Below are positions 29,095-54,775 of a stretch of DNA of 64,000 nt, one piece after another. The stretch lies in NCBI RefSeq assembly GCF_947568905.1, contig NC_079168.1, positions 3,782,001 to 3,846,000 of the forward strand, in the 5' to 3' direction. The stretch comes from Ostrea edulis. Lineage: Eukaryota. A model generated the notes under the pieces. That model ran no database searches and was not told where the DNA came from. It saw nothing but the letters and a program-made list of their open reading frames with translations. A program made the translations under genes and the position numbers. Each line of letters opens with the position of its first letter. Position 1 is the first letter of the stretch.

Positions 29095-30643
29095 ATGTAT
29101 CTTGTCTGGTTAAAATATACTGTGAAAGGTCCAATCGCATCATCAAGGAAGAATTGGATTCAAAGGTAAAAATTGAATTACCACATTTATGGAGAAAAAA
29201 CCCACAATCCGTTTGAATTGCTTTTCATGTTTTCTTAGTCAACTTCCATTAATTTATGATACTTCCAAGTAGTCAAGTACTGGTGAAGTTGACCTTGAAA
29301 ATAATGACCAACAAAACAACATAAAATATAACTATATATATCATGTGGGGAATCAATTTGAATTACCTTGACCTGAGATACAATGACCAAGGTGATGTGT
29401 TAAGAGTACTTGTACACTTACTGACCAGGTGCAGATTGTCAGTCTCAACACCAGCCACGCATTATGATACTTTGGGAATAGGAAGACAAGCCAACACAAA
29501 AGAAATCAAACAGGCATATATTTGTCTCTGTAAAAAAGTAAGTATTTAGTAAACATGGTAAAGAAATTCACAAAGACTGTGTAATTGTCATGATTTTGAA
29601 ACTTATAGTATACATGTAGTATTGCATGTACATGTGATATTACTGACCAGCATAATACATGTACATTTATATAAATGTTTTTATCTGATATATTCCCTTG
29701 TTAAAGAAAAATCTTCATTTGACTATAGGCCTCATAGCTGCATTGAAATTTCAGTTGCACCCAGATGCTAATCCAAGTGACCCTCAAGCACAGCAAAAAT
29801 TTATCCAACTTCAAGATGCTTACAATATACTGAGTGACCCTAAGGAGAGAGCAAGTTATGATGTGCAGATGTACAAGGAGCTGCATTCAAGGGCAAATGT
29901 CAAACAAACATATACCACGTAAGTAAGATCAAGAATGACGTAATTTACGTTTGTTCATAAATATATGACACAGTACTGTAGTAAACATGGATAAAGCAGA
30001 TTGAGCTTGCAAAGTCCTCTCCCATGCAAAGACCAAAGGCAGGCGTATTTTCAGATATTCTGTTAATAGCTCAGGTGACCTATTGCAACTGGTCTGTATC
30101 CGACATGCGTCGTCCATCGTGCGTTAACATTAATTTAACATTTTTAACTTCTTTTTGATAACTACCATTCCAATTCTTTTCAGATGTGGTATGAAGCATA
30201 TTTGGGACAAGGGGGATATAAATTGTAAATTTCAAAAAAAATTCTTCTCTACTACTGCACATGTAAAAGAAAAACTAAATGCATAATGATGTAGAGCAGG
30301 AGGGTCTCTATAACAAACTTGTAAATTTCACGATCCCCGGGGTAGAGGTTCTGTCCCCAGGGCGGGGCCAGACTTGATATGTGTAAAACACTTAAATAAC
30401 ATCTTCTTTAGTGCTATTGATACTGAATTGAAACAAAATTATTACAGTGATTATTGTCTTTATCATTTGAAGGATCGACTTTTTGAAGTTTACTGATACA
30501 GCAACTCCGGGGTTTTGACTTTAGGGTGGGTCCAAATTAGTGATATCGTTTATTACGTAAAGTCTTTGTCAGTATATGCACTTTTAAGGGCATTGAAGTT
30601 TTAAGAACACATTTTTATGCCCCCGAGATCGAAGGGCCTATTG

Positions 30644-30688
<45 letters not shown>

Positions 30689-50400: not shown

Positions 50401-53400
50401 GATTATTTCACATTTAGAATTCATCATATATGTATATGTAAATTACATTTAAGAATAAAAAATATACTGAAAGTCGGGTATTAAAGTAGTTTAGTCTTTT
50501 TTTCCAGTATCACCCAGATGCAAATCCAGGTGACCCGCAATCGCAGCAAAACTTTGTGCAACTTCAGGAAGCTTACAGTATACTTACTGATCCCAAGAAA
50601 AGAGCAGATTATGATGTCCAGTTAAATAGAAATAATTTCAGGACAAACCGAACAGAGTAAGTCTGGCAAAACAAAACAGCTTCATGGAGAGCTACCAAAC
50701 ATGGTTTATTTATTCCTCAAGATGTCTAAATGTCTCATCCTCTGGATTTTACGCCTCGAGATGTTGAGATCTTACTCCTCGAGATGTTGAGATCTCACTC
50801 CACACGAGATATATAGATGTCTCATCCCCAAGACCTTACTCTTTGATGTAGAAACTGTGTGTTGGAGAAATTGTGTAACATATACATATATTAATTATAC
50901 ATGTACAGTAAACCACGATTACAGTGAATACACTAATAATAATAATAAACATGTTAAAGTAAACGTGCTTATAATGAATTCATGTTTACAGTGAAACACG
51001 GTTATAATGAACATGTTTATAATGAATTCATGCTTACACTAAAACACTGTTACAGTGAACATGCTTATAATGAATTCATGTTTACAGTGAAACATGGTTA
51101 TAATGAACATGTTTATAATGAATTCATGCTTACACTAAAACACTGTTACAGTGAACACGCTTATAATGAATTCATGTTTACAGTGAAACATGGTTATAAT
51201 GAACATGTTTATAATGAATTCATGCTTACACTAAAACACTGTTACAGTGAACACGCTTATAATGAATTCATGTTTACAGTGAAACATGGTTATAATGAAC
51301 ATGTTTATAATGAATTCATGCTTACACTAAAACACTGTTACAGTGAACATGCTTATAATGAATTCATGCTTACACTAAAACACTGTTACAGTGAACACGC
51401 TTATAATGAATTCATGTTTACACTAAAACACTGTTATAATGAACATGCTTATAATGAATTCATGTTTACAGTAAAATATGGTTGTAATGAACATGCTTAT
51501 AATGAATTCACGCTTACAGTAAAACATGGTTATAATGAATTCATGCTTACACTAAAACACTGTTACAGTGAACATGCTTATAATGAATTCATGTTTACAG
51601 TGAAACACGTTTATAATGAACATGCTAATAATGAATTCATGCTTACACTAAAACATGGTTACAGTGAACATGCATATAATATTAAAATTCATGCTTACAG
51701 TAAAACACAGTTACAGCGAACACACTTATAATGAATTTACGCTTACAATAAAAGATTGTTACAGTGAACACACTTATAATGAACTCACGCTTACAGTAAA
51801 ACACTGTTACAGTGAACACACTTATAATGAATTCACGCTTACAATAAAACATGGTTACAGTGAACACACTTATAATGAATTCACGCTTACAGTAAAACAT
51901 GGTTACACTGAACACGCTTAATAAAAAGAATTCACACTTGCAGTAGAACACGGATACAGTGAACATGCTTATAATAAATTCACGCATACACTAAAAAATG
52001 ACTACAATGAACATGTTTATAATGAATTCATGCTACATTCAAACACTGTTACAGTGAACACGCTAATAATGAATTCACGCTTACAATAAAACATGGTTAC
52101 AGTGAACATGCTTATAATGAATTCACACTTACAATTAAACATGGTTACAGCGAACACGCTAATAATGAATTCATGCTTACAATAAAACATGGTTACAGTG
52201 AACATGCTTATAATGAATTCACACTTAGGCCAATTCAACTTAATTAGTAGATTATCATCCAGGGTCAGCAAAAAGTATGGGGCGGGTGGGAGGATTTTAT
52301 TTTTTAGTTTTTATTTTCTGAGAAAAATATTAAAGACAAACGATTTTTTTTTTCAACAGATGTGCATCATTTAATGCCAGGTGGATATCAATCTATGCTA
52401 TTTTCACAGATAAATTCCAGGTTAAGCTTTAATTTCAAACAGAATTATACCTAACTTCTTCAAGATTTACGCCTGTAAGAACGCGAGAAATTAAGAAAAC
52501 CATATAGATCTATTTTCTTCACGTGGCTTTCCACGTTGCTATACCGGAAATGTAAACAAGAAGTGTAAATACCGGAGTCGGACATGAAAATATTCTGGAT
52601 TTCGCAAGTTTTGCAAAATAAAAAAATTCAGGGCGGGCCAATTTTTGAGGGGCGGGCGGGGATAATAATCTATCAATTAAATTGAATTGGCCTTACAGTA
52701 AAACACTGCTACTGCGAACACGCTTATAATGAATTCACGCTTGCAGTAAAACACTTACAGCGAACATGCTAATAATGAATTCATGCTTACAGTAAAACAT
52801 GGTTACACTGAACACGCTTATAATGAATTTACACTTACAATAAAAGATTTGTTACAGTGAACACGCTAATGATGAATTCACGCTTACAGTAAAATACTGT
52901 TACAGTGAACACACTTATAATGAATTCACGCTTACAGTAAAACATGGTTACAGTGAACACACTTAATATAATGAATTCACACATACGGTAGAACACGGAT
53001 ACAGTGAACACGATTATAATAAATTCACACATACACTAAAAAATGGCTACAATGAACATGTTTATAATGAATTCATGCTTACATTAAAACACTGTTGCAG
53101 CGAACACGCTAATAATGAATTCACGCTTACAATAAAACATGGTTACAGTGAACATGCTTATAATGAATTCACACTTACAATAAAACACGGTTACAGCGAA
53201 CACACTAATAATGAATTCATGCTTACAGTAAAACACTGTTACAGCGAACATACTTATAATGAATTCATGCTTACAGTAAAACATGGTTATAATGAACATG
53301 CTCATAATGAATAAACACTTACAGTAAAACACTTTTACAGCGAACACACTAATAATGAATTCATGCTTACAGTAAAACACTGTTACAGCGAACATACTTA

Positions 53401-54775
53401 TAATGAATTCAGGCTTACAGTAAAACATGGTTACAGTGAACACTCTTATAATGAATTCACGCTTACAGTAAAACATGGTTACACTGAACACACTTAATAT
53501 GATGAATTCACACATACAGTAGAACACGGCTACAGTGTACACGCTTATAATAAATTCACAGATACAGTAAAACACAGCTACAATGAACATGCTCATAATG
53601 AATAAACACTTACAGTAAAACACTTTTACAGCGAACACGCTAATAATGAATTCATGCTTACAGTAAAACATGGTTACAGTGAACACAATTATAATGAATT
53701 CACGCTTACAGTAAAATACGGTTACACTGAACACGCTTTGAATTCGTGCTTTCAGTGAAGTGATTTGCAATTTTCATTCCCTTTAGTTTTGAAACATATT
53801 ATGAACTTTAATACTGGATATAACAAATTCATTTATAACAAATCAAAACTTATTCATTACCAGCATTTTATTTAATTGTACAAGATGATGATATGACAAC
53901 TGTGTACTGTTTTATAACCTCCTTTTTATTTCAGATACACTCGAAGTACAGGGTATCGTTCAGAAGATGATTTTGTACAGAGTTACTACCAACAGCGAGC
54001 TAGACAACAGAGAACAGGCGATATGTACAATGATTTATACGATGAAATGATAAGAAAAAGCGAAGAAGCAAGACGAAAGGCATATGGTGAATATTACAGA
54101 GACCAAAACAGTAAACAGAAAGCATATGAGGACTTCTACAAAAACCAGGAAAGAAGGCGGAGAGAATTTGAGAACATATATAAAGAATATTATCAGTATC
54201 AATCGCCCGGGTACATGCGAGGCAACCCACGGAGTGATTATAGTAGAAAACAACAGTACCACCCTCACCCTTATACCTCACCATTCGGGAATTTTCTCTT
54301 CACGTTTATATGGCTCTATATTGCTATCAAAATATTGATGTCATTAGTATGGAGTAATGGTATGCTGAATTTTTTTCCTGACCTTTTCTTTTTACTGTCA
54401 AATTACTCTTTCATTTATCACTTCTCTGTTACGTTTATATACGAGCAAATTTATTATTCAAATAATATGGAAACATGATTGTAATGACAAGGAGATTTTA
54501 AAAGAAATTTCCTATTGGGAAACATTTATTGATTTATTGTTATGTTTCTGACTGTCAGATGATTTCAGGCCTTCAAGCAAATTTGATAAAAAAGATTAAA
54601 ATGTGATTTGATTTTTCAATTCAAAAATCAATTCAAACATTACATTTTTAATAATAAATAATCATACAAATGCATGTTCAACTTGTAGCCTAAATATACA
54701 TGAACAACTTTTCGTAATAATTTTTTTTGCACCGTTCTGTTTTTATTTTTAGGTCACTCAGAAAGAGACAGATAA
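47406..54775 (+). CDS. DNAJC4: DNAJC4-like J-domain protein, paralogue C, ~259 aa; exons 47406-47482, 50165-50270, 50508-50656, 53935-54359, 54753-54775 (last exon less certain)
   Basis: [27 protein letters not shown]|[36 protein letters not shown]; Y/R/E-rich linker; TM-like [20 protein letters not shown]; phases 2,0,2,1; 780 nt. A further exon at ~56018-56200 (AATAAA ~56178) may be 3' UTR or an alternative coding end. Confidence 0.87.
47605..48006. mobile_element. MITE family 2 (CAGGGCTTGATGCTAAC ... GTTAATTTCGAGCCCTG) with 5-bp TSD
   Basis: Imperfect TIR; ACCAGTC subterminal repeats; ATCAA on both flanks (47600-47604, 48007-48011). Confidence 0.8.
48065..48892 (+). mobile_element. Helentron/HINE-type element with ~4 internal tandem units (GACCTTGACC motif)
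   Basis: TTATACCCCCCG start, complementary CGGGGGGTA near the end, hairpin GTGAG...CTCAC, terminal CTTGTT. Confidence 0.75.
49234..49646. mobile_element. PIF/Harbinger-like MITE
   Basis: TIR GGCCAAAAAATATATATGTTG / CAACATATATTTTTTTTGGCC; flanks TTA/TTT. Confidence 0.65.
50904..53745. repeat. ~48-bp minisatellite (AATGAATTCATGCTTACAGTAAAACATGGTTACAGTGAACATGCTTAT), ~50 copies, paralogue C intron 3
   Basis: Direct reading; explains ORFs 50982..51731, 53075..53314 and 53084..53770. Confidence 0.95.
52228..52692. mobile_element. PIF/Harbinger-like MITE inserted into the 48-bp array
   Basis: ~33-bp imperfect TIR GGCCAATTCAACTTAATTAG.../...ATTAAATTGAATTGGCC; TTA TSD (52225-52227, 52693-52695); the array resumes in register. 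Confidence 0.85.

Follow-up and report, generated by a model that had tools for sequence, protein, structure and literature searches.

Here we describe an array of J-protein genes in the oyster Ostrea edulis, three of which, the paralogues A, B and C, lie in a 64,000-nucleotide stretch of contig NC_079168.1 (positions 3,782,001 to 3,846,000 of the forward strand; hereafter the window, whose numbering is used unless another locus is named). The three genes probably belong to an old, oyster-wide tandem array of membrane-anchored J co-chaperones of 226-259 amino acids (aa), with DNAJC4/DnaJ-60-type proteins as the nearest named relatives. Locally the array has four genes, the fourth, F, lying just past the window end. 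The encoded proteins follow a common plan, consisting of a basic, acid-poor and Ser/Thr-rich leader of about 35 residues, a canonical J domain, a fast-evolving and largely helical linker of 90-130 residues and a membrane helix. In mechanism A, B and C are ordinary genes of a known kind, and RefSeq already contains predictions for two of them (B and C).

Six-frame scans of the window recover exactly three exons with the HPD motif, at 29758 (+), 40696 (-) and 50511 (+), together with three partner exons that encode the N-terminal half of the J domain and end in Cys-Lys-Lys (C-K-K). Both signatures, which an earlier reading of the bare letters (the sequence-only reading) had named as conserved, are present in A, B and C, and the Cys ahead of K-K-x-HPD is invariant in 12 of 12 family members. 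The open frames, joined through GT-AG introns, agree with the scans and with that reading on three intact paralogues: A at 29095-32676 (+), B at 45128-38332 (-) and C at 47406-54775 (+). The limits it had set are exact, 29095 being the ATG of A and 54775 the stop in the last mini-exon of C. Its intron phases of 2, 0 and 2 likewise hold at homologous positions in all three genes, with GT-AG ends throughout. The phase-2 first intron opens with AG|gt before an Arg codon (A 29165/29429, B 45055/43629, C isoform X1 47482/50165), the phase-0 intron directly follows C-K-K and the second phase-2 intron follows the HPD exon. One correction concerns C alone, which has an additional phase-1 intron (54360-54752) ahead of a seven-codon last exon. 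Gene B had been called nearly invisible among the open reading frames (ORFs); its last exon is in fact a 165-aa ORF, and the gene has a RefSeq annotation. RefSeq proteins of O. edulis match the window at 100% identity.

Gene A is transcribed. Contigs from four public runs were aligned to positions 27100-33099, and a 1130-nt contig of run X2 joins 29065-29163, 29427-29537, 29755-29918 and 32340-33050, every joint being GT..AG. All three joints recur in run X1, and run X4 provides 29537>29755 with zero mismatches. The spliced contigs thus give exactly the four-exon model proposed from sequence, with a 3′ untranslated region reaching at least 33050 and an in-frame stop upstream of the ATG at 29095. 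An alternative form of A without intron 1, in which an in-frame ATG at 29343 would lengthen exon 2 upstream, is ruled out by the same contigs. Compared with the window, the A coding sequence in the contigs of X1 and X2 shows 13 synonymous and 6 non-synonymous substitutions without any stop codon, a pattern compatible with purifying selection acting in a close relative or in a diverged haplotype. Separately, intron 3 of A (30100-32300) contains a 166-bp tandem or interspersed repeat (30895-32180) matched by thousands of contigs at very high depth in RNA-type runs; this sequence, which does not belong to gene A, probably represents an abundant family of transcribed repeats.

B corresponds to RefSeq P0031 (250 aa, 'dnaJ homolog subfamily B member 9-like') and C to P0002 and P0004 (247 and 259 aa, 'chaperone protein DnaJ-like' and 'B9-like'), with exons 2-4 of each gene equal to those of its models. 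RefSeq also gives C an alternative first exon, that of isoform X2, beginning at 47614; only the first exon at 47406 encodes the leader that is kept in other oysters, where it aligns with the Saccostrea and Crassostrea orthologues. Candidate first exons at 43831-43806 for B and at 49906-49931 for C were rejected, since according to the RefSeq proteins exon 1 starts at 45128 in B and at 47406 in C. At the 3′ end of C, the Logan-derived proteins P0005 and P0006 (141 aa) and the ORF P0001 read past the last donor (54359-54478), P0005 and P0006 terminating in SVTFKRF, which differs from the window sequence. This read-through points to a 3′ end of C that is either left unspliced or alternative. The spacer between the divergent genes B and C is a possible shared promoter region. 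The heat-shock element consensus has no match in this spacer or in the promoters, and its single match in the window falls within C exon 4, at chance level.

The proteins of A, B and C measure 226, 250 and 259 aa. For alignments and trees the A, D and F proteins were joined from exon coordinates (D is introduced below); searches used single exons or database proteins. The leaders of A, B and C have 34-35 residues with 4-6 Lys/Arg and 0-1 Asp/Glu, and throughout the family they are Ser/Thr-rich and span 32-38 aa, with 3-8 Lys/Arg, 0-2 Asp/Glu and a conserved Arg at the junction of exons 1 and 2. The J domain is recognised as PF00226 in all three: the two J exons of A meet at profile position 27/28, and the RefSeq proteins of B and C carry the domain. 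Pfam finds PF00226 alone in the oyster proteins, without a Gly/Phe region, zinc finger or DnaJ C-terminal domain. Near the C-terminus, A, B and C each have one hydrophobic 19-mer (Kyte-Doolittle 2.1-2.2) that ends 7-12 residues from the last residue (residues 201-219 of 226 in A, 220-238 of 250 in B). One such segment occurs in every family member (the sequence-only reading had noted membrane segments in A, B and C), and across the oyster family it is followed by 3-12 residues, in tails that are short and often basic (KKF, ITKK, SERDR, GKK).

An AlphaFold2 model of C, made from the family alignment, predicts the J domain with confidence (predicted local distance difference test, pLDDT, >90 over residues 34-105), followed by one long helix spanning residues 121-198 (pLDDT 84-96), a flexible segment and then the membrane helix, residues 227-258; the leader is of low confidence. 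Linkers differ in length, with about 25 aa in F, 90 in A, 115 in B and 130 in C. When the paralogues are compared with one another, identity is 61-70% in the J domain and 18-26% behind it, so that the J domain is far better conserved, in line with the divergent C-termini reported earlier. The post-J parts can still be aligned and share two motifs, S-E-(D/E)-(D/E)-(F/V/I)-x-x-x-Y right behind intron 3 and, more distally, (I/L)-Y-x-(E/Q)-(W/M).

The family extends beyond the window. F (L018:3172-5060 = G000:C5:3848172-3850060, +) lies about 2.2-4.1 kb past its 3′ end and was found through a search with an insect protein. It shares the intron positions of the other members, its linker is very short and it too has a membrane helix (...YAPFLRIFILIVYVMGLTQFGKK); an orthologue of 161 aa occupies the same position in Saccostrea echinata (L025:26453-27239). 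Searching the O. edulis genome itself revealed a fifth paralogue, D, and one further J-protein gene, E. D (L007:773-2563, at G000:C5:29.865 Mb; RefSeq P0036/P0194) is on the same chromosome 26 Mb away, has the same intron positions with a C-K-K|L-HPD split and phase-2 introns, and has a C. virginica orthologue, P0196. E (L008:1471-2124, at G000:C4:68.78 Mb) is intronless; its product of 217 aa combines a J domain with a membrane helix at the C-terminus and groups as a pair with the Logan protein P0114.

By searching the family profile against 1.84 billion representative proteins and naming the resulting clusters, we found orthologues of the individual paralogues in other oysters: A type in Magallana gigas and C. 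angulata (P0180, P0183), B type in Saccostrea cucullata (P0034), C type in S. echinata and C. virginica (P0007, P0008) and D type in C. virginica (P0196). In a maximum-likelihood tree these pairings have ultrafast bootstrap/SH-like approximate likelihood ratio (SH-aLRT) support of 100/99 (A with M. gigas and C. angulata), 100/99 (B with S. cucullata), 97/91 (C with S. echinata) and 99/97 (D with C. virginica); deeper nodes are without resolution. Exon sizes are kept in the orthologues. Gene order is conserved as well. In O. edulis it reads XAP5-A(+)-B(-)-C(+)-F(+), an arrangement also found in Saccostrea and in part in Magallana and Crassostrea. The synteny anchor is XAP5 (PF04921, FAM50-like; 21417-26585, +), which lies directly upstream of A, as it does in M. 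gigas, and whose protein is 89-94% identical to the product of its M. gigas counterpart at that location. In S. cucullata the order is XAP5, A, B in reverse orientation and then C, and S. echinata has B(-), C(+) and F(+). In C. virginica an A-type and a C-type gene are followed by an F420_oxidored gene, which also follows F in O. edulis.

Own orthologues combined with conserved gene order and orientation imply that the genes had duplicated before the oyster subfamilies diverged. The array is thus older than the separation of Ostrea, Saccostrea and Crassostrea/Magallana. The proposal of a lineage-specific trio is not supported: there are four local members plus D, and A, B, C and D each have an own orthologue in other oysters. 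That the trio might turn out to be ancestral and already described had been anticipated; the part on ancestry applies within oysters, and B and C are RefSeq entries already.

Selection was gauged from non-synonymous (dN) and synonymous (dS) divergence between orthologues. For the J domain dN is 0.11-0.25, for linker and helix together 0.32-0.52, and for the leader 0.45-0.62. Because dS is saturated (1.3-3), the nominal dN/dS ratios of 0.06-0.09, 0.12-0.27 and 0.33-0.58 for the same three parts are rough; between paralogues dS is saturated or undefined and the ratio unusable. Sequence comparison thus shows, within that roughness, all parts of the protein under constraint, the J domain most strongly, as expected of purifying selection.

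The assignment to a J-protein subfamily depends on several lines of comparison. The RefSeq name 'DNAJC4-like' is carried by the B orthologue of S. cucullata (P0034) and by a protein of the damselfly Ischnura (P0068). The latter is among the top matches of the family profile at 101 bits, and its own best match in the O. edulis genome is E, followed by C, D and A. When 20 profile hits were looked up, two had a subfamily C name, both 'DNAJC4-like' (the second ten gave names for only two clusters). Many hits, 200-290 aa long, follow the order leader, J domain and single membrane helix, and in most of these another 35-70 residues come after the helix. Protein-atlas sequence and fold searches returned only generic 'J domain-containing protein' clusters. 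Against solved J domains the family profile scores best with DNAJA3 (2dn9, 87 bits; 6iws, 82 bits) and E. coli DnaJ (74-75 bits), and PDB searches started from E and from the insect P0068 failed to tell DNAJC4 and DNAJC30 apart, every one of them being closest to DNAJA3 and DnaJ. Judged on these comparisons, 'DNAJC4-like' would be the best label for the oyster family by slightly better than an even chance. The sequence-only reading had used the same label, and automatic names, J-domain similarity and layout make it plausible; it falls short of proof in that only the J domain aligns and the post-helix tail is missing.

Several observations weigh against our interpretation. The DNAJC4 label rests on automatic RefSeq names, and within the family these names conflict (B9-like, A3-like, DnaJ-like, dnaJ 20 chloroplastic, uncharacterized). 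In trees that include no curated vertebrate DNAJC4 and neither DNAJC4 nor DNAJC30 of vertebrates at full length, the insect DNAJC4-like group is separate from the oyster clade and deep nodes lack resolution. An hhalign comparison of the oyster family with that insect group covers the J domain only (75 columns, 44% identity). Past the membrane helix, the DNAJC4-like proteins of insects and the relative in Dreissena continue for 35-70 residues (60 aa in Ischnura P0068, 35 aa in Dreissena P0159), compared with the 3-12 of oysters. The short basic tail also fits a tail-anchored protein of the outer membrane or the endoplasmic reticulum (ER). Furthermore, B and C rest on RefSeq models and conservation, spliced contigs covering A alone, and the saturation of dS leaves the dN/dS values rough.

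The short tail is what would be expected if the oyster genes were instead co-orthologues of DNAJC30 (Drosophila CG11035), that is, J-proteins of the inner mitochondrial membrane that work with mitochondrial Hsp70 on respiratory complexes. Human DNAJC30 has about 226 aa, a C-terminal anchor and a Cys shortly before HPD. In favour of this origin, the oyster proteins measure 226-259 aa, have a presequence-like leader and, in contrast to the insect hits of DNAJC4-like type, carry their membrane helix at the very end of the protein. We nevertheless consider this origin unlikely: the human DNAJC30 (WBSCR18) J domain, PDB 2yua, reaches 55 bits against the family profile, at about rank 30 and below DNAJA3 and DnaJ, a comparison that samples no invertebrate DNAJC30 and so is not decisive, and no named hit is called DNAJC30 when two are called DNAJC4-like. 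A quite different possibility is that one or more of A, B and C are decaying duplicates without a function of their own, B with its low-complexity linker being the obvious candidate. The 18-26% identity of the post-J parts, the richness of the B linker in Trp, Gln and His and the lack of spliced reads over B and C would all be compatible with decay. Yet every reading frame is open with canonical splice sites, and B, itself a RefSeq model, has orthologues in two Saccostrea species with equal exon sizes and a conserved membrane helix, and nominal dN/dS values against S. cucullata of 0.08 (J domain) and 0.27 (linker). Decay is therefore very improbable.

HPD-dependent docking of a J domain stimulates the ATPase of Hsp70. 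In the DNAJC4/DnaJ-60-type reading that we prefer, the membrane helix would anchor the protein in an organelle membrane, most likely mitochondrial, and the J domain, carried on the helical spacer, would dock Hsp70 through HPD and trigger ATP hydrolysis, so that clients would be captured at that membrane. The paralogues, which differ mainly in spacer and membrane helix, may owe to these parts a preference for different clients or sites. We infer the activation of Hsp70, the identity of the membrane, the topology and subfunctionalisation. Leader composition, the conserved Arg and the C-terminal helix together suggest mitochondrial import and membrane anchoring. In the main alternative, the same C-terminal architecture would belong to tail-anchored J-proteins that face the cytosol from the ER or the outer mitochondrial membrane and recruit cytosolic Hsc70/Hsp70 rather than matrix Hsp70. 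The position of the single C-terminal helix, its short and often basic tails and the absence of an evident signal peptide would suit them, and additional membrane-bound partners are conceivable given the 113 HSP70 genes of oysters reported in PMC11268181. What would be unexpected in such proteins is the basic, acid-free leader of about 35 residues, a possible mitochondrial presequence, which ends in a conserved Arg directly ahead of the J domain and is present in all paralogues and orthologues, including the Dreissena and insect relatives. The J domain, moreover, is nearest to mitochondrial DNAJA3 and bacterial DnaJ among solved structures. We regard the cytosol-facing arrangement as doubtful. 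A bolder proposal is that a single DNAJC4-type gene gave rise to five tail-anchored J-proteins whose spacers act as rulers that place Hsp70 at varying distances from, or different sites on, an organelle membrane, with B and C co-regulated through a shared bidirectional promoter. We hold this to be quite unlikely; if true, the spacer-ruler set would be the co-chaperone counterpart of the large oyster HSP70 expansion.

Table 1. Exons of the array genes A, B, C and F and the spacer between B and C
Feature	Position	Strand	Content and support
A exon 1	29095..29165	+	ATG 29095, 23 codons + 2 nt, basic leader; joint 29163>29427 (cut +2, GT..AG) in runs X1 and X2
A exon 2	29429..29537	+	End of leader, J helices I-II, C-K-K at end; Pfam DnaJ positions 1-27; GT-AG; spliced joints
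A exon 3	29755..29918	+	L-HPD, J helices III-IV; Pfam DnaJ 28-63, E 1.4e-12; joints 29537>29755 and 29918>32340
A exon 4	32340..32676	+	Linker, C-terminal membrane helix, stop; run X2 contig covers 32340-33050
B exon 1	45055..45128	-	Leader MVECFCPVPCKLLRKISLAQVLLT + AG; exact map of RefSeq P0031; donor AG|gt, phase 2
B exon 2	43524..43629	-	J-domain N-terminal half, C-K-K at end
B exon 3	40560..40699	-	Y-HPD, J-domain C-terminal half
B exon 4	38332..38764	-	W/Q/H-rich linker, membrane helix, stop; whole exon 100% identical to P0031
B-C head-to-head spacer	45129..47405		2.3 kb between start codons; same order in Saccostrea echinata
C exon 1, isoform X1	47406..47482	+	Conserved leader; P0004 and P0002 map here
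C exon 2	50165..50270	+	J-domain N-terminal half, C-K-K at end
C exon 3	50508..50656	+	Y-HPD, J-domain C-terminal half
C exon 4	53935..54359	+	Y/R/E-rich helical linker, membrane helix
C exon 5	54753..54775	+	G-HSERDR, stop; after phase-1 intron 54360-54752
F, exons identified	L018:3172-3286, 3425-3543, 4931-5060	+	C-K-K|T-HPD phase-0 split, phase-2 introns

Minisatellites are interspersed with these exons. One separates the 3′ ends of A and B (34944-38334; 3.4 kb, 38-bp unit, about 88 copies, 82% matches) and is open in three frames, giving spurious ORFs of 865-1168 aa. Others occupy intron 3 of C (50947-53738, 48/96-bp unit) and intron 2 of B (41158-42587, 42-bp unit), and the last intron of F holds another large array (L018:3723-4836). 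The XAP5 region at 22001-26000 has an unusually strong G-over-C skew of 0.37-0.40.

Oysters are a model of stress tolerance with a very large HSP70 family, and their J-protein partners are poorly catalogued. In the literature searched, no paper combines 'DNAJC4' with 'oyster', and a search for surveys of oyster DnaJ gene families yielded none among its top results. The conserved set of five fast-evolving, membrane-anchored J-proteins offers a defined choice of candidates that may recruit Hsp70 to particular organelles, and it shows that the automatic names, inconsistent as they are, need harmonising. The understanding of J-proteins as such is unchanged by this result.

Among known systems, DNAJC4 (human HSPF2/MCG18) and Drosophila DnaJ-60 resemble the oyster proteins as small class C proteins in which about 35 leader residues precede an N-terminal J domain opening with (K/R/Q)-T-H-Y-x-x-L-G, and in which a single membrane helix lies downstream. 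The oyster linker, at 90-130 aa, is longer than that of the DNAJC4-like insect proteins and cannot be aligned with theirs, and oysters have five paralogues where DNAJC4 is usually a single gene. DnaJ60 is tabulated as DNAJC4 and CG11035 as DNAJC30 in PMC5597180, where DNAJC30/CG11035 is mitochondrial, and human DNAJC4 has been treated as a MICOS-interacting mitochondrial protein (PMC8185549). DNAJC30 (WBSCR18)/CG11035 shares with the oyster proteins the J domain, the membrane helix at the extreme C-terminus and a similar size, and differs in that the human J domain is a weaker match (55 bits) than that of DNAJA3 (87 bits) or bacterial DnaJ. DNAJA3 (Tid1) and bacterial DnaJ provide the best-scoring solved J domains for the oyster family profile; where these proteins continue into Gly/Phe, zinc-finger and C-terminal domains, the oyster proteins have a helical spacer and a membrane anchor.

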